From assembly GCA_010909165.1 (NCBI GenBank), contig MU008157.1, positions 496,001 to 560,000 of the forward strand: DNA of 64,000 nt. The letters are read 5' to 3'. A model generated the notes under the pieces. The model worked only from the letters and a program-made list of their open reading frames with translations. It searched no databases and was not told the origin of the DNA. The position numbers were made by a program, and so were the translations under genes. Of the stretch, positions 1 through 47,100 are shown in pieces. Position 1 is the stretch's first letter, and every line of letters begins with the position of its first letter. This DNA is from Anthoceros angustus. Lineage: Eukaryota > Plantae > Anthocerotophyta.

Positions 1-2496
1 TCTGCCAGGAGTTTGGTCTCAGCAGAGGAGGATTTGAATGCAGTGTTGTCGTCTGATGGACCTCGTGCTCTGGTGTCGAGGCACAAGGATTTGCTTGCAG
101 CTGCTATGGCGGAGGGGTCAGCACAACCGAATTCTGCAGCAGCTAACGTTGAGAAGGGGAATGGGTACGGTGCAGCTGTCATTATCAGGGCCTGGGTGTC
201 TGCTCAAATCGCTCCTGGCTGGCACTCGAGCCATGGAGACGATCCTCAAGTTCCACTAGGCAGCAAGGCTGTCATTCATCTCAGGTTAGGGGTGCATGCT
301 GACTCTCAGAAACTGGATGAGGAATATGCCCTGCCTGGCAGGTCTAGGATGGTTGACGATGTGACAACGAATAGGCAGGCAAGAGACTTGTTCTTTTTGC
401 TAGTATTACAGGGTTCGGCTGTTAATTCCAGACCAGCGCAGTCTGTTCCAAGGATCACAGAGGACAAGAATTACCTCTACTATTTGTCCGAAACATCGTC
501 ACTGCTAGATCTCGCCCTGGCAGTGAGAGGGGAGGTGCCTGGGGAAGCTTCAGAGAGACAGGGGCAGATGCGTCTGGGCCGCCCCCAATTTACACCGTGT
601 CCAGCGGGGATGGATGTAGACGAAAATGAGGCTCCAGAGTTGTCATCACTTTCTTGGCTTGAAGGCCCAGCATCTGAGAGCATTTCCAGGTTGCGTGTAC
701 TGCTGTCGCCAGTGTTGCAAGGGAATGGTACTAGGACTGAAATGCCTTGTCCTGGGAGTGTCCTTCTACATGGACCACCTGCATGTGGGAAGACTCGACT
801 GGCTTTGGCACTCGCTCGAGATCTGAAGAATGACCCTTCCATAGTGGCCCACACTGTCCTTGTGAGGTGCCCTGAACTGGTTGGGGAGCAAGCCCAAACT
901 GTGAGAGCTGCACTTGAGGAAGCCATCTCTGAGGCACACCTACATGCACCGTCTTTGATCATACTGGATTCTTTGGATGCTCTCTTTCCTTCTTCAGATT
1001 CTGGAGGAAGTGAGCCTGGTATCGCTGCTCTTGCTGAATTCCTCGGGGACCTGATGGATGCCGCGCAGAGAAGCTGTGGACTAGCAGCAACTGCTTTTCT
1101 TGGGGTAGCAAAATCACCTACAACTCTTCCAGCAACGCTGTGCTGTGCCGGAAGATTTGACTTCTATGTGGAGTTACCAGCTCCAGCAGCCAAAGCAAGG
1201 GCAGCCATCCTAGTGCAAGCAGTTGAATCTCGTAGATTTGTATGCTCTCAACAAGTTGCAGACAACGTGGCAGCAAGCTGTGATGGATGTGATGCAATAG
1301 ACTTGGAAGTTCTGGTGGACAGAGCAGTCCATTCAGCCACTGCACGCTACCTTTCTCCCAACGTGGCTCCGTTACCTAGTTCAGCTCCTGCTACTGCTAC
1401 ACCTATAAACGCAGGAGCAGGGGAGGGTGGCAGACTGCAGCGATCAAGGGCACTGACAAGGATGAGTGCAGAGCATGCTCATTTGTTGATGCGCAGAGAG
1501 AAGTTTGAGCTCCTGGAGCAGGATTTTTTGTTTGCACTTGAAGACTTTGTGCCGGTTGCTATGAGGGGCATTGCCAAGAAAGCATCTCAAGGAGAACAGA
1601 TGGGTTGGGACGACGTCGGAGGCTTAACTGAACCTTGTCACAAAATTAAAGACATGCTGGAGACGCCTGCAAAGCATAGCAAGATTTTTGCAGAGGCTCC
1701 CTTGAGGTTGAGATCAGGGGTTCTGCTATTTGGGCCCCCTGGATGTGGCAAGACTCATCTGGTAGGTGCAGCTGCAGCAGCATGTTCACTCCGCTTTATA
1801 TCTGTGAAGGGACCTGAACTTCTGAATAAGTACATCGGAGCTTCTGAACAGGCAGTTAGAGATCTTTTCTCAAGGGCGGCTTCTGCAGCTCCCTGCATCT
1901 TGTTTTTTGACGAGTTTGACGCAATAGCACCAAAAAGAGGGCACGATAACACAGGTGTGACAGATCGTGTTGTGAACCAGCTTCTGACAGAACTGGACGG
2001 CGTACAAGCCCTCAACGGTGTGTTTGTGTTTGCTGCAACCAGCCGGCCTGACCTTCTGGACGCGGCACTCCTAAGGCCAGGGCGGTTGGATCGGCTCCTT
2101 TTCTGTGACTTTCCGTCCACCGAAGAGCGCGGGGACATTTTGAGAATACTGTCCCGCAAATTGCCTTTGGCGGAAGATGTTGATCTGAACCTGTTAGCAT
2201 CGATGACGAATGGTTTTAGTGGTGCAGATTTGCAGGCTGTGCTTTCAGATGCGCAGTTGGAGTCCATCCACTGTTTTCTGGATACCTGTGAAGAGGGCAC
2301 TTTGGCCAGTGGAGGTGAGGAGAGGAAGCCTTTCATTACTATGGCACAACTGGAGGCCACAGCCGCGAAGGCAAGGCCTTCTGTGACAGAGTCGGAGAAG
2401 AAAAGACTCAATGCCATATATGACAACTTCTTGGGTAACAGGTCTGCGTCTTCTATGGCAAGGGACACCAAAGGCAAGCGAGCCACTTTGGCGTGA
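1..2496 (+). CDS. PEX1: Peroxisome biogenesis AAA ATPase PEX1 (5'-partial, open from the window edge, no introns visible)
   Basis: Two AAA modules: GPPACGKT with degenerate Walker B, and GPPGCGKT/ILFFDEFD with SRH ATSRPDLLDAALLRPGRLDR. Also ELLNKYIGASEQ and the plant PEX1 C-terminus KGKRATLA. Confidence 0.93.
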   Translation, partial: SARSLVSAEEDLNAVLSSDGPRALVSRHKDLLAAAMAEGSAQPNSAAANVEKGNGYGAAVIIRAWVSAQIAPGWHSSHGDDPQVPLGSKAVIHLRLGVHADSQKLDEEYALPGRSRMVDDVTTNRQARDLFFLLVLQGSAVNSRPAQSVPRITEDKNYLYYLSETSSLLDLALAVRGEVPGEASERQGQMRLGRPQFTPCPAGMDVDENEAPELSSLSWLEGPASESISRLRVLLSPVLQGNGTRTEMPCPGSVLLHGPPACGKTRLALALARDLKNDPSIVAHTVLVRCPELVGEQAQTVRAALEEAISEAHLHAPSLIILDSLDALFPSSDSGGSEPGIAALAEFLGDLMDAAQRSCGLAATAFLGVAKSPTTLPATLCCAGRFDFYVELPAPAAKARAAILVQAVESRRFVCSQQVADNVAASCDGCDAIDLEVLVDRAVHSATARYLSPNVAPLPSSAPATATPINAGAGEGGRLQRSRALTRMSAEHAHLLMRREKFELLEQDFLFALEDFVPVAMRGIAKKASQGEQMGWDDVGGLTEPCHKIKDMLETPAKHSKIFAEAPLRLRSGVLLFGPPGCGKTHLVGAAAAACSLRFISVKGPELLNKYIGASEQAVRDLFSRAASAAPCILFFDEFDAIAPKRGHDNTGVTDRVVNQLLTELDGVQALNGVFVFAATSRPDLLDAALLRPGRLDRLLFCDFPSTEERGDILRILSRKLPLAEDVDLNLLASMTNGFSGADLQAVLSDAQLESIHCFLDTCEEGTLASGGEERKPFITMAQLEATAAKARPSVTESEKKRLNAIYDNFLGNRSASSMARDTKGKRATLA

Positions 2497-2889
2497 CTTT
2501 TGCAAGTACTCGTGCAACAAGGCGAGGAGGTTGTTGTCATGTCAGATCTTCTGGTCCCAGCAAACTCAGGTACCTAATAACAAATGCCTCCGAAAGCCTG
2601 TAAAAGGCTGTTCTAAAACTCTGACTCCACTCCCAACGTCCTGCATCACCTAGCCAGTATCAGGGCGCTGGCCTCTCTCTCTATCCAGGTAACCTGGTCC
2701 GAAGTCAGGCAGCCGTGATTCGCAAGAAGTACCGGTATCTACCTTCCATTGCCAGCACATCAATCGCTGAACTGTGTACATATGTAATCGTAACATCACC
2801 GGTCGCGAAAGGACGTTGCAGTCATTCCCCTAGGATGATGTGCATTGAGTACCTAGTTTTGGAGAACCAACTTTTTTTGCTCTATCTAA

Positions 2890-3026
2890 AAGAAGAAGAA
2901 GAATACATTATAATCCACTTGGACGAAAGTTTCCCGTCATGGGACTTGGTACTTACCAACGTGTACCATGGTGTGCCTAACCTACTTGCACCAAGGGCAT
3001 GGGCATCCACCCCCTTCAGGCACCCC
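2890..3026 (-). mobile_element. SINE-like retroposon (about 130 nt, (CTT)n tail), TSD ATCTAA
   Basis: Homologous to the copies at 3647, 4977, 19135 and 30564. ATCTAA at 2884-2889 and 3027-3032. Confidence 0.8.
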
Positions 3027-3454
3027 ATCTAAGTACCGATGTACCTGATCCGCATGTCCATCCATATTGCAGGGTCGCCGCTCAATAGTTATCAAACCTG
3101 TAGTCGCACACTTGCATAATTACAGAAAATCACGAGCATAGGACTAAGTAGATAGGTAGTTGCTATGAATGTTGTGCCGAGAAGAAAACAATTCGGAGCA
3201 CACGGTAGCGTGGTGTATCCATATGGCCTGGGTTCAAGCCACCTCCTGCTGGTTCAAAGTTTGTGTTCACATCACCCTATTCTCCGTACCCTGGGCATCC
3301 ACTAGTCTCCCGGGGTGTTCGAGGCGGAGCGTCCGAACCCTTTGCTTCAAGCACAATTCAGATGCTATGTAGCAACAAAGAAGCCCAGGAATGAGAGCGG
3401 CCGGACTAATTATGAAGACATGAAAAGATTTGTATGCCTTTATGGACCCAGGTA

Positions 3455-3580
3455 TGAGGTGAGAGAGGCTCGAACTCTCGACCTTAGGATTCCTCTAGAA
3501 GAAGAAGAAGAAGAATTTTATTTAAGTCCACTAAGGACCTAGAGGTATGAGACCTACGCTAGCCAATGCGCCACCACCCC
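3455..3580 (-). tRNA. tRNA-Met(CAT) elongator with retroposon-expanded intron; damaged duplicate (3 nt missing in the D-arm region)
   Basis: Same as 4781-4909 but with small deletions. Either a pseudogene or a noisy assembly copy. Confidence 0.6.
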
Positions 3581-3646
3581 ATGATGTACAAGTGCCTATC
3601 TTCTAATGTAGAGATCAAAACATTTTGAGGTGGAGCTTAATTAAAA

Positions 3647-3773
3647 GACGAAGAAGAAGAATTTTATTTAAGTCCACTAAGGACGGATTCTCAATGGGAC
3701 TTGGTACTTAACAACTTGTATCATGGTGTGCCTAAGCTATTTGCACCAAGGGCATCCACTCCCTTTAGGCACC
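3647..3773 (-). mobile_element. SINE-like retroposon copy (duplicate of 4977-5106)
   Basis: GAAGAAGAATTTTATTTAAGTCCACTAAGGACGGA...AGGCACC on the + strand. Confidence 0.8.
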
Positions 3774-4232
3774 GTGGCGCGACTTTTCTTGGACAGCAGC
3801 AATCCGTGTCGTTGTAGGAAGGAGTTCGTTCCCAAGGAATAGCCAGTCCGTTTCGGCGTTCGGCGATTCTCGTCTTACTGCGTCCGCTCGCCCAACGCAC
3901 CCACTCCTCAGTTCACGTCTAACTACTCGCGACAAACACCGCACAGCCCGGTATGGCCAAGCGTTTAAGGACCCGTTCGCGTCGTTTGTTCACGTTCATA
4001 CTCACATCCTCGTCCGTGCCTCTCTCTATCCAGGTAACCTGGTCCGAAGTCAGGCAGCCGTGATTCGCAAGAAGTACCGGTATCTACCTTCCATTGCCAG
4101 CACATCAATCGCTGAACTGTGTACATATGTAATCGTAACATCACCGGTCGCGAAAGGACGTTGCAGTCATTCCCCTAGGATGATGTGCATTGAGTACCTA
4201 GTTTTGGAGAACCAACTTTTTGCTCTATCTAA

Positions 4233-4366
4233 AGAAGAAGAAGAATACATTATAATCCACTTGGACGAAAGTTTCCCGTCATGGGACTTGGTACTTACCA
4301 ACGTGTACCATGGTGTGCCTAACCTACTTGCACCAAGGGCATGGGCATCCACCCTTCAGGCACCCC
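4233..4366 (-). mobile_element. SINE-like retroposon copy (duplicate of 2890-3026)
   Basis: Same sequence and same ATCTAA TSD as 2890-3026. Confidence 0.8.
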
Positions 4367-4780
4367 ATCTAAGTACCGATGTACCTGATCCGCATGTCCA
4401 TCCATATTGCAGGGTCGCCGCTCAATAGTTATCAAACCTGTAGTCGCACACTTGCATAATTACAGAAAATCACGAGCATAGGACTAAGTAGATAGGTAGT
4501 TGCTATGAATGTTGTGCCGAGAAGAAAACAATTGCACACGGTGGCGTGGTGTATCCATATGGCACAGGTTCAAGCCACCTCCTGGTTCAAAGTTTGTGTT
4601 CACATCACCCTATTCTCCGCACACAGGCATCCACTAGTCTCCCGGGGTGTTCGAGGCGTCCAACCCTTTGCTTCAAGCACAATTCAGATGCTATGTAGCA
4701 ACAAAGAAGCCCAGGAATGAGAGCGGCCGGACTAATTATGAAGACATGAAAAGATTTGTATGCCTTTATGGACCCAGGTA

Positions 4781-4909
4781 TGAGGTGAGAGAGGCTCGAA
4801 CTCTCGACCTTAGGATTCCTCTAGAAGAAGAAGAAGAAGAATTTTATTTAAGTCCACTAAGGACCTAGAGGTATGAGACCTACGCGCTAGCCAACTGCGC
4901 CACCACCCC
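4781..4909 (-). tRNA. tRNA-Met(CAT) elongator with a 55-nt intron (11-nt intron plus 44-nt insertion)
   Basis: Sense GGGGTGGTGGCGCAGTTGGCTAGCGCGTAGGTCTCATA-[intron]-ATCCTAAGGTCGAGAGTTCGAGCCTCTCTCACCTCA. Exons differ from 30848-30932 by only 2 pairing-compatible changes. Confidence 0.85.
4826..4864 (-). mobile_element. 39-nt 5'-truncated LINE/SINE tail inside the tRNA-Met intron, TSD CTAGA
   Basis: Identical to the 3' end of the SINE at 4977. CTAGA at 4821-4825 and 4865-4869. Confidence 0.9.
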
Positions 4910-4976
4910 ATGATGTACAAGTGCCTATCTTCTAATGTAGAGATCAAAAACATTTTGAGGTGGAGCTTAATTAAAA

Positions 4977-5106
4977 GACGAAGAAGAAGAATTTTATTTA
5001 AGTCCACTAAGGACGGATTTCTGTCAATGGGACTTGGTACTTAACAACTTGTATCATGGTGTGCCTAAGCTATTTGCACCAAGGGCATCCACTCCCTTTA
5101 GGCACC
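4977..5106 (-). mobile_element. SINE-like retroposon, 67 bp upstream of tRNA-Met
   Basis: Full family consensus from GGTGCCT to (CTT)n. Confidence 0.85.
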
Positions 5107-8100
5107 TGTGGCGCGACTTTTGCTGACGGCCAGCCGGGCGCGCACAATCCCGTGTCGTTGTAGGAAGGAGTTCGTTCCCAAGGGAATGACAGGCTCCGTT
5201 TGCAGCGTTTCAGGCGATTCTCGTCTTACTTTGCGTCCGTTCAGTTCCAACGCACACACTCCTCAGTTCACGTCTAACTACTCGCGACAAACACCGCACA
5301 GGCCCGGTATGGCCAAACGTTTAAGGACCCGTTCGCGTCCGTTTCGTTCACGTTCGTTACTCACACCTCGTCCGTTCCTCTCTCCACTCACACTACACTT
5401 ATCAGTCTTAAGGAAAGACGCGCGGGTTACACAGTCCGGACCTCCTCCGTCGTTCTACCGGGCCTCTCCGTCCGGGCTCTGCACGCCCTCCCGGAGTCCC
5501 TCCGGCTCACACGTTCCGGTCCGTTCGGTGGCGGGCGCGGCTCGGGCGAGCACGGTCCCGCCACCTCCCCGCACACACCACAACACGTTAGGTCCGTCAC
5601 GGGACCACGATCAATCCCTCCGAGTCGCCGTGCTCGCCGACTCGAGGACTCACGTTAGCAAGAAGACACACAAAGGTGCAAGAACGCGGCATCAACACCA
5701 AGAGAAAGATGATTTATTAGCGTGACCCTCTTATACTACGCCGGTCGGCGTCTTTATTACACCCCTATTACGGTGATGGCATTTCGGTGTACTAATCGAC
5801 CGCCTACCATCCTATTCCTCCTCCTATCTCCTTCGCCGGCGGTGGGGGGGAAGGTCCGAGTTCCGCCTTGGGATTGGTGGTCCAATCTCCCGTCACGGCG
5901 GTTGCGGCGCAATCGGATGATCCGCGAGGCGGACCTCCTCTCCCGGAATCACAGCCGGGTTGGGCTCGGCGGTCGGCGCCGCCGTTACCACGTCATCCTC
6001 CCTGGCCTCCCATGGGTCCCCTCGGTGGGGCCTATATCTGCTCCCCAGCGTAAGTCGAAGGGCTCCTCCTTCTTGCCGAGTCGACCTCGAGGTCCGGTCT
6101 CGACTCAGTGAACTCCGGTCGGCTTATTTCTGAGTCCGGTGGGTCCGGCCGTCTCGGGTTCGGACCTCGGTCCGAACTTATTCAGTCCGGTCCCCAAGCT
6201 CGGACCCCCCACTGTGGACCTCGTCTTGCTAGGTCCTCCTCCCTACCCCCCGACCCTTGTCTTGGTTGGGTTGGCTCCCCTGCACTTTCAGGCCCGTCAC
6301 CTCCCTTCTCCTGAGCGGGTGGTGGTGAACTTACCCTAGGGTCCGTTGCGTCCGCTCCTCTTGGGGCTCTTCTCCTTGCCGTCGTCTCCAAACAGGGCCC
6401 CTAGGGTCCCTGTACTGTCCCCGTGCCCTTCTTCCCCTCAGGGGCCTTCCGAGGGGTCAGGCGTGGTGAGAGGCCTCTGCCGGGGAGCTCGGTGTGGTAA
6501 TAGGCAAAGTCCGAATCCACTTGTTGGATTGCCTCTTCCACGTGTGCGGGCACCGATACTCCCTTCGCCATAGGTGCTCAGGTCTTGCCGGCTTGTTGGT
6601 CCACCTCCCGAGTTTGATATGGGCGGGGCTGCTTCTCATGGCAGGCTGCCTCGGTCACCTCCAGTGTCATGTTGCTCCACTGCTCCAACTCCTCCGCTTG
6701 GTTCATTTGCCGGCTTGCCCGCCATAGCGCGGCGTTCCGCCTTCCTCGGTGGACCAGCGGCTTCTTATGCCTTCCGGCGCCCTCGCCTCTTTGTCCATTC
6801 TTACATTAACTCCGCCATCTCCCTCTCTCGACGGTGCAACCTTGCGGGCGGGCTTCGCCGAGCCCTTCTCCATCTCGGCGGCGTCCTGCTCCTGTTCCGC
6901 CGTCTGCTCCGTCGCCAGCGGGCCGCTCTATTTCCCGGTCGCGTTCCGCGACCATGTCCTGCAGACTACCATTCCTCTCAATGATAGTTTGAAGCTGCAG
7001 CTCCAAAGTCTCCTTGCGGTCTTCCATCTCCTGCCGCTGCTGCTCCACCTCCCGGAGCTGAGTCTGGAGATCCTCCATCTCCTTGTCGCGAACTTCTTGG
7101 GCCTGGCTGGTCCGCGCTTGCTCCGCCACCTCCTGCTCCATCTTCAGGCAGAGCTGGAGGCGCTCTATCTCCGCTCGAAGTCCTGGATTCTCTTGTTGAG
7201 AACCCCTTGCTGCTTTGCCAGCGTCTTGGAGTTGTAACTCCAAGGTGTCCTTCTTGTCCTCCTCCTCCGCCTCCCTTCTCCTGCTTGTGCATACAGGGTC
7301 CCCGATTTCCGGGTCTTGGCCTCAGTGTTTTTGCACGGCTCGTCCGTGCTTGCTCACTGCTCGGCCTTGATTGGCGTGGCTCTAGCCTCCCTCCACGGTT
7401 CGATCACGCCGATAGTGATCGCGATCGGCCGCCGTGGCTTCCGCCTCCTTGGCCACCTTCACGAGCCTCTCGGCTTGGCTCGGTCGGTCAGCTGCCTCCG
7501 CGGTCCGCGCCGCTGCTTGCGCCCGGGCCTCTCGCTTCTGCTGCGCTACCCCTCACTGCGAGGTCCTCGGCCAGCTTGGGCCTCCTTAGCTGCCGGTGCT
7601 CCTCCGGTGAAGGAATTTAGTCCGGTCCTTGCGGATGGACGGACCTCCCTCTCGGCCTCGGCGTTTCCCTTCCTCAATCCGGCCGAGCTTGGCCTTCCTT
7701 CTGCCTCCTGGGCCCCTCAGCTCACGGAGGAGTACCATGCGCCTCGGGTGGCTTCTACCTCCGGGTCTTCTCGGCCATCCCAGAGACCCCAAAGCATACC
7801 GTCCATGGCGGTAGCAGGACCGCCGTGTTTCTTCCACGGCGCTGAGTGAGGCTCCCACAAAGTCCGTGGCGGGGCCGGCATTTCACGGTCCGCCAAGGAC
7901 CTCCATACCTTGTCGGAGTAAGTCGGTGGGTTCTCCGGACCTAATCGGGACCCTTAGGTCCCCGAGGCCGAGCTTCACCCTCCTTGGCCCCAGGCGCGAG
8001 CTCCTTCTCGCCCTTTTTCTCACAGGGCTCGGAGGTGAGGGAGTCCGGAGCAAGCCCTTTTGCCCCTTCACATCGGCAGGACCGGCTCGGTCAGTGCGGT

Positions 8101-11678: not shown

Positions 11679-13432
11679 ATCATTGACTCTATCTTGACCG
11701 ACATGGGGTCTCACCAAGACATGAGGGCAAACTAGCATTACAAAAGGTGTCAGGACTGAGAGCACCAACTTCCAAGCTTAAACTGTTCCCACAGAAGTTG
11801 CTTAAAGGTTCCCAACCCGGCTGTTCAGCACGGGAGACTGCAGCAGAGAAGCCAATCAAAACGAAACCGTTTCCCAACCCCGCATTCCAGCATGGGAGAC
11901 GGAAGTAGATAAGCCTGTCAAGACGACACAATGGATGCTGCAGCCATCTGCTGGCCCATGGCCCAGGTTATCGAGTCTTAGAGACATTGGTGAGAATCAA
12001 GTGAAATGAGAGCAGGAGGTGAAAACGCAGCTCGCACCTCGCTACTGCTGCTTCTTCTGGAGTTGTGCACTTGCTTTTTATTCATATGGAATGGCTGCTC
12101 CAGCACATCAGACAGCAGGCCAGAGGCGCACGAGGCCCTGACTGCCTGCTGAGTGCCTGGATTTTGGCTTTTCAAGGCAGCGATTCCCCAAGCAGGCCCG
12201 CAGCCCCTCGGGAACACAAACAGGTTCAAGGTCTGCTGAAAGATGGTGTTGCCGTTGGAAGACACGAAGCCAACCTCCAGAGTGCCTTCCACCAGAACAA
12301 GAGTTCCGAGGCCCGCCCTTCCCCCCAGCTAGATATTCTACATGTTGGTGTCGTGAAATACATGTGCAAAGACGACCCGGAGGATCAGTATGTTCAATGT
12401 AGCTTGGGCAAGCTGAACGCAAACGGTTGTTCCGCCACAGCAAACGCCGAATCCTGGTTGTCAGGGAAGAAGATGTCTGCTGGATGGTTGCTCCTGTTGG
12501 ATTCACACTGTCATAGTTTGGACACGAAGCTTAGCATCTCTGGCAAGACCGAAGTCGAATTGCACTCTGTCGTGAACGTGCACCGTTGGTAGGAGATAGT
12601 ATTACAGACGGATTGATCTTTACATGGGGGATGTGACCTCGCAGACTTGCCCGTCTTCCTTGCAATAATGTGATAGTCCCCACTAAAATGATGCGGTGTC
12701 ACCTGTCGGATGCCACCTCCTTTCAGGCATATGATCTGGGACTTGCTTTACAACCAGCTCGACGGTGGACACACAAGAGGTCGATGCTGTACCACTGAAA
12801 GCTTTCTTTCTGCCAGCGTCAGTCTCTATACTGGAAGCTCACAGAGCCGGGTCAACCTCAATTTATGACGAGGAGTTCGTAGGTGCGCATACATATCAGA
12901 ATCTTCGAAATCTTGAATGTGCGCACCTCATACAGTGTGCAGTCTAATCCTTCACCCTCGTGTTTGGCTGTCCGGAATCGGGTCCGGCAGTCCGAGATCG
13001 CTTCCGGTAACAGTTTCATCCGTTTTGAGTTTGGTATGTTAGGTTCAGCTCGGGAGCGAACCTGCCAGAAATTCTTAGTGGCCCTTTCAGGCCGCTAAGG
13101 GGGGTTGGAAAAAGTTTTCAACCAGCAATTGACGCGTCTCGGTATTACCTCACGAACTGCGTCATTGCCCCAAGCGCAAAGATGAAATGTAATGTCCCAG
13201 GGCTCTATTATATACTCTCAATTCGTGTCAGTCAAATCTCCTCACCCAGTATGGGATATATCGACACCCTATAGCATTAAGCCCATTGCCCACATTCTTG
13301 TGAAAGTGTAAAAGGCCCCTCGGGAACACGAACACAAGTCGCTCTTCTTCAGCGTCAGCTCAAAAGGGTTTTGCTTTTGGAGGAAGAAAACTTGCCGACT
13401 GGCTAGCTTTATCATCTAAGGACGGCGTCAAT

Positions 13433-14859: not shown

Positions 14860-16745
14860 TGTACCCTATGGAGAGGCAAGGCCATGTATGGTTCTTTACT
14901 TTTCTTCCATGTGCTTTTGTACTCTACTGAGAGGCAAGACCTATGGTTCTTTGCTTTCTTTCATTCTCCCTTGTACCTTACTGAGGCGCAAGGCTCTGTA
15001 TAAGCAAGGCCATGTATGGTTCTTTGCTATCTGCCTGTGCACGCTACATAAAAAACCAAGTATGGTTTTTTGCTTTCTGCCTCTACACGCTACATAAAAA
15101 ACCAAGTATGATTTTTTGCTTTTTGCCTCTACACGCTGCATAAAAAACCAAGTATGGTTTTTTGCTTTCTGCCTCTACACGCTACACAGAAAGCGTGTGC
15201 ATGCTACACCATCTATGGTTGCACGTTACACCTAGACGCTACACCATCTATGGTTCTTTTGCACACTACACAGAAAGTGTGTGCATGCTACACCATCTAT
15301 GGTTGCACGTTACACCTAGACGCTACACCATCTATGGTTCTTTTGCACACTATACAGAAAGCGTGTGCACGCTACACCATATATGGTTGCACAAAGTGTG
15401 TACGCTACACCATCTATCGTTGCACGTTATACCTGTATGCTACACCACTAATGGCTCTTTTGCTTGCTGCTGCACCATCTATGATCGCTCACTACAACTA
15501 TGCACGTGGTTGCACGTTACATCTGTACGTCACACTATTTATGGTTCTTTTGCTTGTTGCTACACCATCTATGGTTGCTCGCTATACCTATACACGCGCT
15601 TGCACGCTACACCTGTATCCTACACCATTAATGGTTCTTCTGCTTGCTGCTACACCATTAATGGTTCTCTTGCTCGCTGCTACACCATCTATGGTTGCTT
15701 ATACCTGTACGCTACAGAATTTATGGTTCTTTTGCTCGGTACTATACCATCTATGGTCGCACGCTACAGCTATGTAGGCTACACCATCTATGGTTCTCAT
15801 ACTACATCATTTATCATTCATATGCACGGTACACCATCTATGGTTCTCATACTACACCATTTATGGTTCTTTTGCTCGCTGCTATGTAGCGAGCAAAAGA
15901 GCGCTCACATAGGCGTAGAGAGCAACCTTTTGCTCGCTGCTATGTAGCGAGCAAAAGAGCGCTCACATAAGCGTAGAGAGCAACCTTTTGCTCGCTGGTA
16001 TGTAGCGAGCAAAAGAGCGCTCACATAGGTGCTCTCACATAGGTGTAGAGAGTAACCATAGGTGTACACCTATGGTTGCTCTCTACACCTATGCACGCTA
16101 CACCATCTATGGTTCTCATAGATGCTTGCTACACTTAAGCATGTGGTTCTCATAGATGTTCGCTACACCTATGCATGTGGTTCTCATAGATGCTTGCTAC
16201 ACCTATGCACGTGGTTCTCATAGATGCTCGCTACACCTATGCACGCTACACTCTCTATGTATGGTTGTTTGCTCTCCGCTATACCATCTATGTATGGTTG
16301 TTTGCTCTCTGCTACACCATCTGTGTATGGTTGTTTGTTTGCTCTCCGCTACACCATCTGTGTATGGTTGTTTGCTCTTTGCTACACACCTACTCTTGTT
16401 TGCTCTCTGCTATATACCATTTGTGAATGGTTATTTTCTCGTGAATGGTTGTTTGCTCTCCGCTACACACCAACTGTGAATGGTTGTTTGCTCTCCACTA
16501 CACACCAACTGTGAATGGTTGTTTGCTCTCCGCTACACAATTGCCCTCCGCTGCACAAGTGCTCTCCGCTATACATCATTTGTGAATGGTTGTTTGCTCT
16601 CCGCTACACAATTGCCCTCCGCTGCACAAGTGCTCTCCGCTATACACCATTTGTGAATGGTTGTTTGCTCTCCCCACACCTGGTCTCCGCTACACACCAA
16701 CTGTAAATGGTTGTTTGCTCTCCGCTACACCATCCTATGGTTGCA
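14860..16745. repeat. Degenerate minisatellite array (core GCTACACCATCTATGGTT) with a palindromic centre at about 15870-16090
   Basis: Dozens of variant units are directly visible. The Cys/Tyr-rich ORFs here are repeat artefacts. Confidence 0.9.
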
Positions 16746-16765
16746 TTGCTAGCTACGCTCCATAT

Positions 16766-18428
16766 GAAGAAGAAGAATTTTATTTAAGTTCACTAAGTAC
16801 GGATTTCCGTCATGGGACTGATCTGACAGATATACAAAGAGACTATAATGAAATTTAAGCGCTATTCGAGTCGTGAGACTAGTGCTGTGAGGCATAATCA
16901 AATATCCGGCAAGTTGAGAAGTTGAATTTGGTTGGTCCTCATTTCCCACATTTGTTTCAAGCAAACTCCAGCAATAATAGAGTCAGGAAAATTGAAAAAA
17001 CCCCTGAGTGAAGATCGAGCTGTTGTAAATAGATTGATAAATTTATGCCTGATATCTTCATATATGGGATAGTGGAACACAAAGTGTTCCTCAGTCTCAA
17101 CATCCCTGTTGCATAACCTGCAAATTCTGGACTCCTTTGGTGGCTTTGGACGTAGCCATCTATCAGTCTCAATCCTGAGACGGTGAGATCCGATACGAAG
17201 ATGGCCCGTAATCATCCTAAGCCTGAAAGACACAGGGGTGCGGAGATAGAGAGGAAGCACTGGTTTCCTGGAGTTGGAAAGGCTAGGGAAATCCGGGAGA
17301 AACTCGGGAAGACTCTCGAGACAGAATCCAAACTTCTCGAGCCAGGAAGAAGACTGAGCATACCAGCAGGTCTTGTTACCTGAGGAGGCTAACTTTCGGG
17401 AGGACTGGAACGCAAGAAGGAGATATGAGGGAGTGCGGGTGGGGTGATTAGACTGAGCTTCTTCTAAAGAGTAAAGGTGGTATAGGAAGTTGGTTAGGCG
17501 AAATAGACCCTCAAGTTCAAGCGGGAAAGTGGCAAACTCTGCAAGAAAGATGGCAAGGGGGACAAACTTCTTACATGCAATGTGGGGCCGAAGAAAGGAC
17601 GTCTGAACCTCCTCCACCTTGCGCCAGTCGTCGAGGGAGAGATAGGGTCCCCAAAACTCAGCCGCATACATAGCCCAAGGAACAACAACTGTGTTGAAGA
17701 GCCATTGCTGAGTGGGGATGTCTTTGATGTGCATCCTAGAGCATTGTCTCCGAACCCCACAAGCAGATGCCACACCCTAGACAATGCGAGCAGAGGCAGA
17801 GAGCTTCCACTGGAGTGTTGGGCCATAGAGAGTGCCTCCTAGGTAGACATAAGATCGAACAACCTCCACATGTTCACCATTATAGAAGAACTTCAAATTG
17901 TGCTCAACTGGATCCCGCCGGTTGAAAAACATGACCTTGGTCTTCTTCAAGTTCACTTCCAAATCTTTTGCCGTGGAGAAGCGGGACAATGTGTTTAGTT
18001 GCTGTTGGAGGCCCTCAGGAGAATGGGACAAAAGAGCAATGTCATCTGCATACAAGAGAATAGCTATATATACGAAGGAGAGGAGGCAGCCAGGATCCCC
18101 AGACTCCGCAATCCAAGACTCCATGGAGCTCATCCATGAACAAGCCAAAAAAGTTGGGAGAAGATGGATCTCCTTGCCGCACTCCCAAATTGCAAAGCAA
18201 ATCCAAAAGGTCAAAAGCAGCATAGGGAGTGCGGATCTTGGCCTTCACCTTTTCATAGAGAACCTGTATGGCATGTAAAAGATGAGCAGGCAACCCCAAC
18301 CTATGAAACGAGGCAAAGAGCTTCTCGCGGGAGATAGAGTCAAAAGCTTGGTTGAAATCAACAAAACAGACATAAACATGTCTATAATCCTTCCGCCTGC
18401 TCTTGGCCTCGCTCTCTTCTCTCTCTCA
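16766..18428 (-). mobile_element. 5'-truncated, frameshifted LINE (RTE/RTEX-like RT plus C-terminal Zn motif) with a (CTT)n tail
   Basis: VCFVDF..AFDS, GVRQGDPSSP, LLYADDIALL, VNLKKTKVM, and GSHRLRIETDRW...ICRLC..ETEEHF. The last ~50 nt match the SINE tail. Confidence 0.9.
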
Positions 18429-19134: not shown

Positions 19135-19259
19135 GTGCCTTAAGGGAGTGGATGCCCTTGGTGCAAGTAGCTTAGGCACACCATGGTACAAGTGTGAAGT
19201 ACCAAGTGCCAAGACGGAAATCCGTTCTAAGTGGACTTCAATAAAATTCTTCTTCTTCT
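19135..19259 (+). mobile_element. SINE-like retroposon, 98 bp upstream of tRNA-Ala
   Basis: GTGCCTTAAGGGAGTGGATGCCCTTGGTGCAAG...AATAAAATTCTTCTTCTTC. Confidence 0.85.
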
Positions 19260-19534
19260 CATGACCGCCCTGGCGACTTTAGCTGTGAGCTCAAGACCGC
19301 CCTGGCCACTTTAGCTGTGTTTTGAGCTCATGCTCGACTCCATAGGCTCGACAAGCAGATGCTTCTACAAATTCTGACTAGCTAGCGCGTTGTCGTTCTT
19401 CCACACAAAGGAGGAAAGTAAAGGGCCTTTCGTGGCAACAGCTTGTCTGAAGCCGACACGAGAGAAGAAGTCTAATCTAGTCCACTTGGACGGAATGTTT
19501 TTCACAAATTTTCGTCTGTTGTGAAGTAGGCCAA

Positions 19535-30490: not shown

Positions 30491-30563
30491 ATTTTGGTGA
30501 TATTGAGGTACTCATAATATATCTCCATTTGGCCTAATAAGAACGTCATGATTAAGCATCCTT

Positions 30564-30677
30564 GGAGTGGATGCCCTTAGTACAAGTAGGGTAGGCATAC
30601 CATGGTACAAATTGTTAAGTACCAGGTCCATGACGGAAATCCATCCTTAGTGGACTTAAATAAAATTCTTCTTCTTC
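30564..30677 (+). mobile_element. SINE-like retroposon (slightly 5'-truncated), 170 bp downstream of tRNA-Met
   Basis: GGAGTGGATGCCCTT...CCTTAGTGGACTTAAATAAAATTCTTCTTCTTC. Confidence 0.85.
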
Positions 30678-30847
30678 ATAACTAGATTTTGGTACTACTT
30701 AGATACTCTTAACTTATTTAAATAATATTTTTCATATTTTAAAATTATATAGATTTCTAATTTTGAATTATATAAAAATTAAACATAATTTTTAAGATAA
30801 ATACATATACGGAAAAATTTTACCCTATCACATTGAAGAGGAAAAGA

Positions 30848-30932
30848 TGGGGTGAGAGAGGCTCGAACTCTCGACCTCAGGATTTCTCAGTAGCTATGAG
30901 ACCTACGCGCTAGCCAACTGCGCCACCACCCC
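30848..30932 (-). tRNA. tRNA-Met(CAT) elongator with canonical 11-nt intron
   Basis: Plant tRNA-Met(e) cloverleaf. Intron GCTACTGAGAA follows position 37, and TTTT lies immediately downstream. Confidence 0.95.
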
Positions 30933-31495: not shown

Positions 31496-32579
31496 TCAAG
31501 GCGCCAATGCACAAGCCTGCGTCGCCGGATTCCACACCGCGGGAAGCAAAAACGTCCTCTTCTTGATCCCAATCGCATTGTAGGAAGCTCCAGTGCGGGC
31601 GTCCTTCTGCAAATCCCCCGGCCAGCCAGGAAACGCTCCCGGCCCGAAGTTCCCCGCGCACGCCGTGGCCGCCTCCAGCGGCAGCCGCCCGTCCCCCTGG
31701 TAGAACCCGTTTCCCAAGGGATTGGTAGCAGCTCCCGCCAGCACCGTGGCGATGTTGATCACCATCCCGTCCACCCCGACGTCGCCGTTGGGAGGCTGCA
31801 GCGGCTCGAAGTCTGGAGCTCCCGGGAACGATGGCCTGGCGAAGGGCCAGGCGCACATCCCCGGGCACTGCTTCCCCGCGTTCCCGACCCAGGCGTACGG
31901 CACCCGCACTTCCGCCTTCTCCTTCTCCTTATCCCCCGCCTCCACCTTCACGTAGCTGTGCGCGCCGCACGAAGAGACGCAGAAATCCTCCACCACCACG
32001 TCCTCGGCCGTGAGCAGGAGAAGCACGCTGTTCTCCGCTGCCGGGATGGCGCCGCTTTGTAGCGCCTTCTCCACCAGGATGCCGAGATCCGATCGCTTCA
32101 GCTTCTTTCCAAGCATCCGCGCCCCCCGGTCCTCGATCTGCCCCGCCAGCTCCAGCTCCGGCTCCACATCCGTCACCGTCACATCTTCCTCCCCTCGCAA
32201 TTTCTTCTTGTACCCGCTCACCAGACTCCACCACTCCCGCACCGTGGCCCCCGCCGTGACCTCCCGGCCCGGACACGGATCGGAGGAAATTCACGACCGT
32301 GTGCTTCTGCGGCTTGCTGAAGCTCCCGTACCAGAGGATGTAAACCTTCACGCCTCCCAGCACGGGCCCGCCGTGGTAATCAAGAAGGAGAGGCGCCTCC
32401 GGGACCAGCCCCAGGAGCTTGCGGCTAACGAACGCATGCCTCGGCCTCGGCCCTGGGCCAGCCCCCTCCTCCGCCGTCGGCTCCCTCTTTCTCAGAAGCC
32501 TCCCGCTCTCCGCCGGCGACACCGCCATAGCCAGCAGCAGCAGCAGCATCGCACACAGCCCCACCCTCAGCGCCGCCAT
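31496..32579 (-). CDS. EXORDIUM/Phi-1 family secreted protein with a 1-nt frameshift near 32265
   Basis: Signal peptide, LDYHGGPVL, VYILWYGSF, then WVGNAGKQCPGMCAWPF, PPNGDVGVDGMV, ATNP, LEAATAC and FLLPAVWNP in the shifted frame. Confidence 0.85.
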
Positions 32580-33306: not shown

Positions 33307-36282
33307 TCAAGGGATCGCTCTTGTGTGCGGTAGGGACATAGGGTTTGCGTTTGTGTCAATGGATGGACTGTTTTGTGTGCTAGATAGTGGAACATGTTGC
33401 CCTTCCTTCACGCTGGGAAGGACATGTTGCAGCCGTGCTTGACTCTTGGGATGCTCCTTGTCCCCAGCCAGGAAGGTGTGCACCAGTCCGTCCATATCTG
33501 TCCACCAGCTTTGGCCCGGCTGCTTCCATGCTCTGATTTTCTTTCTCCTGGCCTGCATTTCCTGTCCCTGCTCCCACAGCTGGGCAGTGCTGTATAAGCT
33601 TGACATCAACACGTATGATGCGGCGTCTTTGTGGTCTAGTGTCACTGCTTGGTTGAAAGCTTGGCGGCCCACCTCCACGTTGCTCCATTTTCGACAAGCA
33701 CCTAACAGGGTGCGCCAGACTGTGGCATCAGGTGGTACGGGCATCGTTGTTGCTAGAGTTAGTGCCTCGTCCAGTTGGCCGGCACGGCCCAGGAGATCCA
33801 CCATGCAGGTGTAGTGCTCCACTGCAGGGGTGATACCGTGGTGTTGTTTCATAGCCTCGAAGTACTGTCGGCCCTTGCTGACCAGCCCTGTATGACTGCA
33901 TACTGATAGTATGGCGAGGAATGTGATGGCATCTGGATGTGTGCCATCCCCTTTCATTTTGAGAACCAAGTCGAAGACCTGGTCGCTGGCTCCTTGGTGA
34001 CTGTATCCTGCGATTAGCGCATTCCAAGCGGAAGTGTCTCTTTTGGGCAATGCATCAAACACCTGCTGCGCATCGGCCATGCTCCCACACCTTCCATACA
34101 TGCTTATCAAACTGACAGCCACGGACACATCACCTTGAAGCTCCTGTGCCTCGATCTGGGCATGTAGCTGCCTTCCCAGGTGCAAAGCTGCAACATTTGC
34201 ACATGCTTGCAGGAGGCAGACAAATGTCATGGAATTGGGTACCGCGATGCCTTCGTCTTGCATAGCACTGTAAAGACGAATCGCTTCCTGCCCCATGCAG
34301 TGCTGGGAATAACCTGCAATTAGAGCCGTCCATGTTACCACATCCTTCTCACCGAGTTGGTCAAACATTCTTCGAGCATCCTCCAAGCTGCCACACTTTG
34401 TATACATGTTCACCAAACTGCTGGCAACAAAGATATCAGATTGATATCCTCGTTTCCTGATTTGTGCATGGAGAAGCTTTCCTTTCTCCAAAGCTGGGGT
34501 GCCCACACTTGCACATGCCTGCAGGAGGCACACACTTGTCATGGAATCGGGTATGGAGATGCCTTCTTCTTGCATAGCACTGTAAAGGCCAAGGGCTTCC
34601 TGCCCCCTGCCCTGCTGGGAATATCCTCCAATGAGAGCAGTCCACGTTACCACGTCTTTATGAGCAAGTCCGTCGAACACTCTATGAGCATCTTCCAAGC
34701 TGCCGCACTTTGCGTACATGTTCACCAAACTGTTGGCTACAAACACATCAGCCTGCTCTCCTCGTTCTCTAATTTGGGTATGAATCTGCCTCCCTTTCTC
34801 CAAAACCGAGGTGCCCAAACTTGCACATGCATGAAGGAGGCACACAAATGTCACGGAATTGGGGACAGCAATGCCTTCTTCTTGCATTGCACTGTAAAGC
34901 CGAAGGGCTTCCTGCCCCCTGCCCTGCTGGGAAAAACCTGCAATAAGAGCGGTCCACGACACCACATCTTTCTGACGAAGTCCCTCAAAGACTATCTGGG
35001 CGTCTTCTAGGCTGCCACACTTTGCATACATGTTTACCAAACTATTGGCTACAAACACATCAGCTTGGTACCCTCGGTCTCTGATTTGTGCATGAAGCTG
35101 CTTCCCCCTCCCCAATGCCAGGGTGCCCTCACTTGCACATGCCTGAAGGAGGCACACAAATGTCACAGCATTGGGTACAGCGATGCCTTCGTCTTGCATA
35201 TCACTGTAAAGACAAAGGGCTTCCTGTCCTCTGCCCTGCTGGGAATACCCTGCTATCATAGCATTCCATGTCACCACATCCTTTTGACCAAGTCCCTCGA
35301 ACACTCGTTGAGCCCCTTCCAAGCTGCCACACTTTGCATACATGTCCACCAAGCAACTACAAACGAACAAATCAGGCTCAACGCCAGAAGCCATCACATC
35401 AGCATGCACCTGCTGCCCAGCTATCAAATCTCGTGCCCTTGCACAAGCCTGAAGGGCTGCCACAAAGACATGGCCATCTGGCTTCACACCTGACCTGCGC
35501 ATCCGATGATACAGCTCTATGGCCTCCTTGTCCTGCCCCTGTTGAACATGCGCAGAAATTATGGAAGACCACATGAAGGCATCTGGCTTGCCAACTACGG
35601 TGAACACATCCATCGCGTCTTGCAAGCTGCCATGAGACGCATACATTCGCAGGATATGATTGCCCAGGAAAGTGTCCGACTGGTATCCCTGTCTTACAGT
35701 GAGAGCATGGACCCGACGACCCAGCACAAAATCCTTCTTACCCACGCATCTCTTCAGCACATTGTAGAAAAGAGCATTGGGAATGCAACAGTCAGTCTGC
35801 ACTAAAACTCCCAATGCCTCAACAGCCTCAGTCACATGACCACGATGACAAAGCTGGCTCACGGTTTCAGCCGTTAAGCCCGTGTGCCATCCAGTGGGTC
35901 CGCGAGGGTAAGGGTCATCCGGCAATTCACGAGGACCCATCTCCTGGAGCTCCTCATGCTGGAATGTGATTTCACATCCTCTGGGACGGTCTGGGTCTCT
36001 TGCGCCGGTGGTGCAATTCGTGGCTTCCTTGTTTGCCGACGCTTGCTTCCTCGAAGACAGGCGAGCGGGAGCTCTTCCAGGTAACCCATCACCTTGCTGA
36101 GTCCAGGGAAACGATCCCCACAAGAAGTCCTGGTGCCCTTTGCATGACTCAATTCCCATGCTCGTCGCAACCATAGAGCTACATGAAACTGAGCCGATAC
36201 CTATACATGCTGGGCACTGGCCAGCCCTGTCACATGGCTCTCCCATACCTATACATACATGCTGGGCATGCTTGAAGATCAT
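33307..36282 (-). CDS. PLS-class PPR protein, E1-E2-E+ (PGQSWW box, no intact DYW); organellar RNA-editing factor
   Basis: P-L-S triplets, P2-L2-S2 (VEHYTCMVDLLGRAG), E motifs and QPGQSWW. Intronless. Confidence 0.92.
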   Translation of the reverse strand: MIFKHAQHVCIGMGEPCDRAGQCPACIGIGSVSCSSMVATSMGIESCKGHQDFLWGSFPWTQQGDGLPGRAPARLSSRKQASANKEATNCTTGARDPDRPRGCEITFQHEELQEMGPRELPDDPYPRGPTGWHTGLTAETVSQLCHRGHVTEAVEALGVLVQTDCCIPNALFYNVLKRCVGKKDFVLGRRVHALTVRQGYQSDTFLGNHILRMYASHGSLQDAMDVFTVVGKPDAFMWSSIISAHVQQGQDKEAIELYHRMRRSGVKPDGHVFVAALQACARARDLIAGQQVHADVMASGVEPDLFVCSCLVDMYAKCGSLEGAQRVFEGLGQKDVVTWNAMIAGYSQQGRGQEALCLYSDMQDEGIAVPNAVTFVCLLQACASEGTLALGRGKQLHAQIRDRGYQADVFVANSLVNMYAKCGSLEDAQIVFEGLRQKDVVSWTALIAGFSQQGRGQEALRLYSAMQEEGIAVPNSVTFVCLLHACASLGTSVLEKGRQIHTQIRERGEQADVFVANSLVNMYAKCGSLEDAHRVFDGLAHKDVVTWTALIGGYSQQGRGQEALGLYSAMQEEGISIPDSMTSVCLLQACASVGTPALEKGKLLHAQIRKRGYQSDIFVASSLVNMYTKCGSLEDARRMFDQLGEKDVVTWTALIAGYSQHCMGQEAIRLYSAMQDEGIAVPNSMTFVCLLQACANVAALHLGRQLHAQIEAQELQGDVSVAVSLISMYGRCGSMADAQQVFDALPKRDTSAWNALIAGYSHQGASDQVFDLVLKMKGDGTHPDAITFLAILSVCSHTGLVSKGRQYFEAMKQHHGITPAVEHYTCMVDLLGRAGQLDEALTLATTMPVPPDATVWRTLLGACRKWSNVEVGRQAFNQAVTLDHKDAASYVLMSSLYSTAQLWEQGQEMQARRKKIRAWKQPGQSWWTDMDGLVHTFLAGDKEHPKSQARLQHVLPSVKEGQHVPLSSTQNSPSIDTNANPMSLPHTRAIP

Positions 36283-36458
36283 CACTGTGGTAAATGTAAG
36301 AATTATGAGATGACAACTAGACTAATGAGATTTTTTGCAAAGGCCAGAGCTATAAAGGCCAGTCCCGACGTGAGGGGCGAGGGAGGACGGTGTTGACCGG
36401 GATAGCCTCCTCTGCAGCAGCTGGCTCAAGGGACAGGAGTGTTTGATCTTCATTGGCC

Positions 36459-44110: not shown

Positions 44111-47100
44111 ATGCTTCTGCCGATCAGGGCTGCCTGTCGAGTGGCATTTCACTCATTCAGGGCGGGAGCTCATCCAAACGAGTGTCTGGCAAGTGAGGGG
44201 TTGCACCAGGAAATTGTGTGCCGGCAGTTTTTTTGGGACTATATGCTTGGGTCGGGTAGCAGGCAACAGCATACGAAATGCTCTGACTTCCGGCATGGGA
44301 AGTCCCAGGAAGTTCGCTTGTTAAACAAGTCCTACATTCCAGGTTGGGTGGATGAGGAGGTGGCTGCTCAGGATGTGCAGATGGGTCGTGGAGCCCCTAC
44401 ATCCAGGCCTGCAAAATACCCAAGGGACGCAACGCCTGAAACCGTAAGCATACTATGTGAGCAGGGGCAGCTCAGTGAGGCTGTCGAGGCTCTGGGAGTG
44501 CTGGTGCAGACAGGATGTTGTGTTCCTGATGTTTTTTATACTGTCCTGAAAAAATGTGTGGTCCAGAGAGATCTGGTTCTGGGCCGGCGGGTCCATGCCC
44601 TCATCGTGAAAGGAGGTTATGAGTCGGACACATTCTTGTGCAACCACATCTTGCGGATGTATGCTTCTCATGGCAGGTTGCAGGACGCGATGGATGTGTT
44701 TGCAATGGTGGCCACACCCGATGCCTTCACGTGGTCTGCCATAATTTCTGCGCTTATTAAACACGGGCAAGATAAGTGGGCCATACAACTGTATCATCAG
44801 ATGCAGAGGACTGGTGTGAAACCAGATGGCTATGTCTTTGTAGCAGCCCTCCAGGCTTGTGCAAGGAGAGGAGACTTGAAAACTGGGCAGCAGGTGCATG
44901 GACATGTATTGTGCTGTGGGCTTGAGCATGATGTGTTTGTTTCCAATTCCTTGGTGGACATGTATGCAAAGTGTGGTAGCTTGGAAGACGCTCAAAGAGT
45001 GTTTGACGGACTTGCCCAGAAGGATGTGGTGACGTGGAATACCATGATAGCGGGATATTCCCAGCAAGGCATGGGGCAGGAAGCTCTGCGTCTTTACAGT
45101 GTTATGGTAGCGGAAAGCATTGCTGTACCCGATTCTGTGACATACGTGAGCCTCTTGCAGGCGTGTGCAAGTCTGGGTACCCTGTCTCTGGAGGAGGGGA
45201 GGCACCTTCATGCGCGAATAAGAGAGTTGGGACTTCACGGTCATGTGTTCGTGGCCAACAGCCTGATCAACATGTATGCAAAGTGTGGCAGCCTGACCGA
45301 CGCGCAAAGAGTCTTTGACCAACTAGGTCAGAAAGATGTAGTGACGTGGACAGCTCTCATAGCGGGGTATGCCAACCAGGGCAGTGGTCAGGAAGCCCTC
45401 CATCTCTACAGAGCTATGCAAAATGAAGGTATTGCAGTACCGAATTCGGTTACTTTTATGACTCTCCTGCAGGCATGTGGAAGTGTAGGCACCTTGGCTT
45501 TGGAGCAGGGGAAACAGCTTCACGCACAGATTGAAAACCAAGGACTTCAATCTGATGTGTTTGTAGCTAACAGTTTGGTAGACATGTATGCAAAGTGTGG
45601 CAGCTTGGAAGATGCTCAAAGAGTCTTCGATGGACTTGGTCAAAAAGATGTGGTAATGTGGACGGCTCTGATAGCTGGGTATTCTGAGCAGGGTATGGGC
45701 AAGGAAGCCCTTCATCTCTACTGGGCTATGCAGGAAGAAGGCATTGCTGTACCGAATGCTGTGACATTCTTGTCTCTCCTGCAGGCATGTGCCTGTGTGG
45801 GTACCCTGGCTTTGGACATGGGGAAACAACTTCATGCACAGATCATAGAGCGAGGGCTTCAGGTTGATGTTGTTGTAGGTTGTAGCCTGGTGAACATGTA
45901 CGCAAAGTGTGGCAGCCTAGAGGATGCTCAACTCGTCTTTGATGGACTTGGTCAAAAAAATGTGGTCACATGGACGACTCTGATAGCAGGATATGCAAAC
46001 AGTGGCGCCTTGGAAAATGCTCAAAGAATTTTTGAGAGGCTTTCAGAGAAAGATGTCGTGATGTGGAATGCCATGATTGCAGGATATTCTCAGCAGGGTA
46101 TGGGGCAGGAAGCCCTTCGTCTTTACAGCTCTATGCAAGAAGAAGGCATGGTTGCACCCAATTCTGCAACATTTGTGTGTCTCCTGCAGGCCTGTGCAAG
46201 TGTGGGCACCTTTGCTTTGGAGAAGGGGAAGCAGTTGCATGCAGAAATAAGAGAGCAAGGACATCAAGCTGATGTGCTTGTAGCCAACAGTTTGGTAAAC
46301 ATGTATGCAAAATGTGGCAGCTTGGAAGATGCTCAGAGGGTGTTTGATGGACTTGGTCAGAAAGGTATGGTGACATGGACTGCCATGATAGCAGGATATT
46401 CCCACCACGGCATGGGGCAGGAAGCGCTTCGTCTCTACAGTGCCATGCAAGAAGAAGGTATTACTGCACCCGATTCTGTGATGTTTGTGTGCCTCCTGCA
46501 GGCATGTGCACGAGTGGGCACAATGGCTTTGGATGAGGGGAAGGAGCTCCATGCACAAATTCAAAAGCAAGGGCTTCTATCTGATGTTCTGGTTGCAAAC
46601 AGTTTGTTGAACATGTATTCAAAGTGTGGCAGCCTAGATGATGCTCAGGGTGTATTTGATGGACTTAGTCACAAAAATATGGTGACGTGGAGTGTCATGA
46701 TAGCAGGATATTCCCAGCAGGGAATGGGCCAGGAAGCCCTTCGTCTTTACAGGGCTATGCAAGAAGGAGGCATTGTTTTACTGGATTCTGTGACATTGGC
46801 GTGCCTACTGCAGGCATGTGCAAATCTTGCAGCTTTGCATCTGGGAAGGCAGCTACATGCACTTATTGTGAAGCAAGGGCTTCAAGCTGATGCCCTTGTA
46901 GCTGGCAGTTTGATAAACATGTATGGAAAGTGTGGGAGCATGGCTGATGCCCAGCAAGTTTTTGAGGCATTACCTGCGAGAGATGTTGTTGCCTGGAATG
47001 CGCTGATTGCAGGCTACACTCGTCAAGGGGATACAGAAGTGGTCTTTGACTTGTTTCGCAGAATGAAGGAGGATTGCATACAGCCAGCCGGGATCACATT

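Follow-up and report, generated by a model that had tools for sequence, protein, structure and literature searches.

Known tRNA introns and retroelements at tRNA genes

The nuclear tRNA introns of land plants are few, short and uniform, and the route by which eukaryotic tRNA introns are gained or lengthened is unsettled. The introns of nuclear tRNA-Met and tRNA-Tyr genes measure 11-25 nt in Arabidopsis (PMC13728533, PMC13578239), and splicing in wheat germ depends on the D stem and on the length of the anticodon-intron helix (PMC13728533). The plant TSEN enzyme is probably an (alpha-beta)2 assembly and may read local structure more than its animal and yeast counterparts do (PMC10485636). Longer nuclear tRNA introns are found in other lineages, reaching ~64 nt in Ostreococcus tauri (PMC13578239). 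Long introns of this kind keep a helix-bulge structure and have been shown to be spliced. The tRNA intronic circular RNAs of Drosophila offer a further comparison for long tRNA introns.

Retroelements are connected with tRNA genes in several organisms. Copies of the Dictyostelium elements TRE5/TRE3 and DGLT-A and of yeast Ty1/Ty3 cluster at tRNA genes, where they insert at fixed distances outside the gene (PMC5006619, PMC5911963). Transposon hits in redundant tRNA genes are ordinary, and so are retroposons truncated at the 5' end; an exact landing in a tRNA intron that leaves both exons whole is unusual. A literature search found no report of a transposon inside a nuclear tRNA intron, an absence that is weak evidence.

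The window considered here, a 64,000-nt stretch of the hornwort Anthoceros angustus (assembly GCA_010909165.1, contig MU008157.1, positions 496,001 to 560,000 of the forward strand), contains such a configuration in a tRNA-Met gene on the minus strand (4909..4781). Like the elongator tRNA-Met genes of land plants, this gene has the anticodon CAT, an intron at the 37/38 site and a reconstructed pre-insertion intron of 11 nt with G(-3) available for C32. Unlike them, it has a 55-nt intron, well beyond the range reported for land plants, which starts with C instead of G and in which the anticodon-intron helix is predicted to be absent. The inserted segment resembles the 5'-truncated LINE/SINE copies that target-primed reverse transcription (TPRT) generates: it has a simple-repeat tail, a shortened 5' end, a short target-site duplication (TSD) and a possible microhomology between AGA and the tail. 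It differs from the usual ones in being just 39 nt long and in lying inside the intron of a Pol III gene. In this window, copies of the family to which it belongs appear to cluster at tRNA genes as TRE5/TRE3, DGLT-A and Ty1/Ty3 do; in contrast to those elements they lie at variable distances and in both orientations, and one of them is intragenic. Finally, the intron matches the long introns of other lineages in measuring tens of nucleotides and in its canonical position, whereas a recent repeat fragment accounts for its extra length, and the helix-bulge structure is predicted to be lost.

Overall, we suggest that a (TTC)n-tailed SINE/LINE inserted into a tRNA-Met paralog, which then became a poorly spliced or dead copy; we give this explanation a probability of about 0.6. 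If the gene is dead, which we hold likelier, the locus would be an ordinary redundant tRNA gene disabled by a repeat, and a data point for the apparent attraction of the family to tRNA genes. If the intron is accurately spliced, the locus would provide the first record of a land-plant nuclear tRNA intron lengthened by a retroposon, and by a datable event.

A tRNA-Met gene with a 55-nt intron

The gene at 4781-4909 (minus strand) is a full-length tRNA, matching positions 1-71 of the Rfam model RF00005 with 44.5 bits (gathering score 29). When introns are permitted, ARAGORN recognizes a tRNA-Met with anticodon CAT whose 55-nt intron follows position 37, i(39,55). The 5' exon (4872..4909, minus strand) comprises positions 1-37 with the anticodon CAT and an intact A box, and the 3' exon (4781..4816, minus strand) comprises positions 38-73 with an intact B box. 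Between them the intron, which begins with C, occupies 4817..4871 on the same strand; its placement at the canonical 37/38 site comes from ARAGORN and from alignment with a normal paralog whose intron is 11 nt long.

This paralog, an elongator tRNA-Met gene at 30848..30932 (minus strand, 85 nt, Rfam 48.7 bits, assigned also by alignment), has its intron at 30884-30894. The intron reads GCTACTGAGAA, and the paralog served as the reference for the "empty" state. In its bacterial mode ARAGORN miscalls the paralog as tRNA-SeC (tca); since it is an ordinary elongator tRNA-Met, the call gives no ground for supposing that a land plant decodes selenocysteine.

Alignment of the unjoined exons of the filled gene with those of the paralog gave identity at 70 of 72 positions. 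The 5' exon is identical throughout, and the only exon changes are two transitions in the 3' exon, G43A and C71T, which yield the derived A43 and U71 and the pairs U27-A43 and G2-U71. The first-pass annotation of this DNA had named exactly these two differences, and the alignment agrees. The A and B boxes are the same as in the paralog, and neither the discriminator A73 nor the cloverleaf is disrupted. With its CAT anticodon, 37/38 intron and conserved exons, the gene belongs with the elongator tRNA-Met genes. Both substitutions keep their base pairs within a full cloverleaf, which speaks against impairment; the argument is a weak one, since about half of all stem transitions would do likewise.

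The signals for Pol III are also in place. A T-run scan found no T4 on the sense strand within the filled gene, and the first one beyond it (4749..4752, minus strand), which follows the gene by 29 nt, is the likely terminator. On its antisense strand the insert does carry a T4, which the opposite orientation would have placed inside the gene; the annotation had drawn attention to this asymmetry, and correctly. With intact A and B boxes, no T4 on the sense strand of the insert or of the rest of the gene, and a downstream T run, read-through by Pol III is plausible. The flanks are plainer than those of the paralog, whose terminator TCTTTT starts 2 nt past the gene end: upstream of the filled gene there is no CAA or ACAACAA at the start site, the DNA is less AT-rich than the corresponding paralog sequence, and a copy of the repeat family lies 68 nt away. 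We gave this difference little weight because the flanks of a tRNA-Ala gene in the window are comparably plain: its start site lacks a CAA, and its T4 comes 13 nt after the gene end.

The insert is the 3' end of a short retroposon family

The inserted segment (4826..4864, minus strand) is 39 nt long and is a severely 5'-truncated copy of a repeat family, identified by an exact match to a family probe, by its fit to positions 88-125 of the 125-position family profile and by alignment with other copies. On the plus strand it consists of A(GAA)5 followed by 23 nt that match the 3' end of the family consensus. Read on the gene strand, a stem-loop (GTCC-TTAGT-GGAC) leads into TTAAATAAAA and from there into a 16-nt (TTC)n tail. 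The insert is colinear with the profile, and all of its non-tail bases equal the consensus (23/23). Hence, it represents the extreme 3' end of a (TTC)n-tailed retroposon family.

The insert is bordered by two copies of CTAGA, as read on the plus strand, one next to the (TTC)n tail (4821..4825) and one next to the truncated 5' end (4865..4869). Removal of the insert together with one CTAGA leaves an empty intron of 11 nt, CCTCTAGAGGA, which shares with the paralog intron both its length and the triplet G7-A8-G9, the nucleotides that pair with C34-U33-C32 in these 11-nt introns. We regard this agreement in both features as the strongest internal evidence confirming CTAGA as a genuine TSD. Exact matching against metagenome contigs, a collection that evidently lacks DNA of this plant, gave no hit for the 5' exon with the start of the intron or for the family tail, and so no observed empty or filled allele. 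The locus thus displays both a duplicated target and a reconstructable empty site, as retroposition would leave them. The annotation had proposed a LINE/SINE tail of 39 nt with a 5-bp duplication, expanding the intron from 11 to 55 nt; direct reading, the probe and the profile all support this account, and we consider it highly likely that the insert arose by 5'-truncated retroposition into the tRNA intron.

Predicted folding of the precursor

We predicted precursor structures under the constraint that all four arms of the mature tRNA form. The RNA was treated as naked, that is, without bound enzyme, La-type chaperones or modifications; the empty allele carrying CCTCTAGAGGA was included as a computed construct. 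For the paralog the prediction is a textbook substrate: the anticodon-intron helix forms, a 3-nt bulge holds the 3' splice site, and the 5' site lies in the loop. The probability of the C32:G(-3) pair under these constraints is 0.99 in the paralog, 0.72 in the reconstructed empty allele and 0.00 in the filled gene. Forcing the anticodon-intron helix in the filled gene costs 5.9 kcal/mol relative to the ensemble, which corresponds to a conformer fraction of 7e-5 at 37 C, 1e-5 at 25 C and 2e-6 at 15 C; across 15-37 C the fraction stays within 1e-6 to 7e-5.

The dominant predicted fold of the filled gene instead contains the insert's own hairpin (-8.8 kcal/mol) and a tail hairpin (-6.3 kcal/mol). 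In this fold the 3' splice site is buried within a duplex of the (UUC)n tail and AGAGGAA that spans it, while the 5' splice site is unpaired in the predicted ensemble. Neither an anticodon-intron helix of >=3 bp nor a 3' site in a single-stranded bulge, the structure expected of a splice-competent plant pre-tRNA, is thus found for the filled gene in silico. Akama et al. (2000) are said to have found that a C at intron-exon boundaries impairs the splicing of pre-tRNA-Met, and an extension of the anticodon stem shorter than 3 bp reportedly abolished it.

The annotation had regarded the insertion as tolerated and the intron as apparently still spliceable, on the grounds that a perfect 7-bp stem between CCTCTAG and CTAGAGG loops out the insert and that the antepenultimate G of the intron is kept. 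Both features are indeed present in the sequence. However, the stem CCUCUAG/CUAGAGG uses G(-3), A(-4) and G(-5), the partners of C32, U33 and C34, and since the same nucleotides are involved the stem and the anticodon-intron pair are mutually exclusive. The claim of spliceability is therefore unsupported: the two features cited for it exclude each other, the helix is predicted at ~1e-5, the 3' splice site is paired, and the D arm of a twin gene with the same insert has decayed (see below).

A tolerated insertion would mean that Pol III transcribes the gene, that the endonuclease removes the 55-nt intron and that a working tRNA-Met with A43/U71 results, making the locus a live case of retroposon-driven intron expansion. 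Several observations fit such a gene, among them the intact cloverleaf, A and B boxes and A73, the pairs kept by both exon changes, the unpaired 5' splice site, the 7-bp stem that loops out the insert in ~10% of the predicted ensemble, and the introns of ~64 nt tolerated in other green lineages (Ostreococcus tauri; PMC13578239). The freedom from sense-strand T4 in the present orientation, unlike in the opposite one, also fits, but one orientation of two is no evidence of selection. Against tolerance stand the near absence of the anticodon-intron helix (~1e-5) together with the base-paired 3' splice site, the mutual exclusion of that helix and the 7-bp stem, the reported dependence of plant splicing on helix length (PMC13728533), the decayed twin and a normal paralog 26 kb away, which makes the filled copy dispensable. 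Taken together, these points make a tolerated insertion rather unlikely.

The competing folds suggest that the filled gene is most likely poorly spliced or dead and on its way to becoming a pseudogene like its twin. Four considerations favour an impaired or dead gene: how the precursor is predicted to fold, the decay of the twin, the derived state of two exon positions and the existence of a normal paralog. Judged from these predictions and comparisons, the odds of impairment or death against continued splicing would be roughly two to one. A point against impairment is that eukaryotic endonucleases also place their cuts via the mature domain. The filled gene and its normal paralog could serve as a natural pair of substrates for asking what the poorly known plant endonuclease needs: intron length, the anticodon-intron helix, or local structure rather than a mature-domain ruler.

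Copies of the retroposon family near tRNA genes

A 32-nt probe taken from the insert matches the window 7 times (0 expected; none in 100 shuffles). With a profile built from six copies we found 9 matches in the window: six of ~125 nt with a common 5' end, one of 57 nt and the two intron inserts. A full copy at 4977..5102 (minus strand, nhmmer 130.7 bits, profile positions 6-125) has the same orientation as the tRNA-Met gene, and its tail ends 68 nt upstream of the tRNA start, while the copy at 4231-4356 lies 425 nt downstream of the filled gene. Other copies of ~125 nt are found at 2889-3014, 3647-3768, 19138-19261 and 30557-30679. The 57-nt copy (16763-16819) indicates that the family does make 5'-truncated insertions. 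Directly downstream of it, at 16600-16760 (minus strand), there is a run of imperfect ~30-nt tandem units resembling GTGTAGCGGAGAGCAAACAACCATT.

Besides the copies at the filled gene, one lies 102 nt away from the tRNA-Ala gene, and another is separated from the normal tRNA-Met gene by 169 nt. With the tandem duplication described below collapsed, 4 of 6 independent family insertions lie <200 bp from 3 independent tRNA loci, a clustering reached in 5 of 1,000,000 trials under uniform random placement (P ~5e-6, for a small sample from one window). The distances to the tRNA genes vary (0, 68, 102 and 169 bp), both orientations occur, and no fixed geometry is apparent. The clustering may reflect a shared preference for open chromatin. 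Around the truncated copy at 16.8 kb, a search admitting E values up to 1 revealed no tRNA or other Pol III gene. In 2400-5700 the filled gene and its twin were the only RNA-family matches, with no 5S-like RNA among them, and the U4 spliceosomal snRNA gene of the window (13043-13183, minus strand, Rfam 102 bits) has no adjoining family copy.

The full-length copies in the window have no clear target-site duplications, so the 5-bp duplication at the intron insert cannot be assigned as typical of the family. As to an autonomous LINE partner, the window contains no reverse-transcriptase ORF. The annotation had further seen in the filled gene a possible intermediate in the birth of a SINE. This idea is speculative and finds no support here: within the transcript the tail lies internally, with the 3' exon coming after it, and no element joining a tRNA-Met head to such a tail occurs in the window. 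A broader reading combines transcription of the filled gene, continued splicing of the 55-nt intron despite the competing folds and a preference of the family for Pol III genes, with the possible release of a stable intron RNA bearing the LINE recognition stem-loop; we consider this combination decidedly unlikely.

The proximity of a full family copy raises another possibility, namely that a double-strand break in the intron was repaired with filler DNA templated by this neighbour, 68 nt upstream of the gene, and that the insert is no retroposition. End-joining in plants can copy nearby sequence, and the copy at 4977-5102, ~110 bp away, is identical to the insert over 34 nt. However, the insert ends exactly in the family tail and has 5-6 TTC units as against 4 in the neighbour, which argues that it is not a plain local copy. 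Moreover, filler synthesis does not produce a clean 5-bp duplication, and the left junction shows no microhomology (intron CTAG|GTCC versus donor ATCC|GTCC). An origin as filler is thus very improbable, and retroposition remains the preferred account of the insert.

A tandem duplication and a probably decayed twin gene

The filled gene lies in a two-unit tandem duplication of ~1.35 kb per unit (2675..5384; units 2675-4019 and 4020-5384), as defined by blastn and by alignment of the units. Each unit carries a tRNA gene with the insert and two family copies, and the breakpoints fall within CCTCTCTC runs. The units are 94.7% identical over 1386 columns (blastn). In the alignment, identity is 98-100% over most of their length and 68-83% in the last 280 bp; blocks of 100% stand beside blocks of 68-89%, and many of the differences are indels of 1-6 nt. 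This patchiness suggests gene conversion or assembly noise.

The second tRNA gene of the duplication (3455..3580, minus strand) was delimited by pairwise alignment and contains the same insert (3500-3538). Three nucleotides are missing from its D arm, namely G15 and a CG in the D stem; it scores 29.8 bits with the Rfam model, and D-stem pairs are broken. Judged from these deletions, this twin is probably a pseudogene; alternatively, the three D-arm deletions are read errors. As the insert is identical in both units, the insertion is older than the tandem duplication, and at least one copy is free to decay. An assembly artefact, in which the insert or the twin with its 3 missing bases stems from misassembly or read indel errors, would fit the many 1-6-nt indels between the units and the D-arm differences of the twin, which are pure deletions within ~290 bp of otherwise identical sequence, but it is hardly credible for an insert that recurs base for base in two units differing elsewhere by substitutions, with junctions logical for a real insertion (TSD, restored 11-nt intron).

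Proposed origin and fate of the filled gene

We infer the following order of events for the insertion and subsequent impairment from the anatomy of the locus. Target-primed reverse transcription would have begun on the plus strand midway through the 11-nt intron, at ...TCTAGA; the plus-strand sequence of the empty site is TCCTCTAGAGG. The primer would have come from a nick after ...CTAGA, and its AGA could have paired with UCU in the tail of the RNA. Reverse transcription would then have proceeded through the tail and the 3' stem-loop and halted after 39 nt, and a staggered second nick would account for the 5-bp duplication CTAGA. Later, the locus and two neighbouring family copies would have been duplicated in tandem by unequal exchange in CT-rich runs. 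In the precursor of the filled gene, the insert hairpin, the (UUC)n-AGAGGAA pairing and the 7-bp stem are predicted to out-compete the anticodon-intron helix.

Neighbouring genes

Upstream of the duplicated block, an ORF of 827 codons (13-2496, plus strand) represents the 3' part of PEX1, the C-terminal portion with two AAA domains, and ends ~180 bp before the block. The closest relative of its product is a protein from a Logan assembly (65% identity), and identity to liverwort PEX1 is ~55%; no identical protein is on record for the exact product. The 11.4-kb Logan contig that encodes the relative carries no tRNA gene and ends ~470 bp after the stop codon.

The other long ORFs of the window are two long intron-free PPR-E genes of the organelle RNA-editing type (33307-36285, minus strand, and 44111-47692, plus strand) and a Phi_1/EXORDIUM-like ORF (31496-32242, minus strand). 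These nearby genes place the tRNA cluster in gene-rich DNA.
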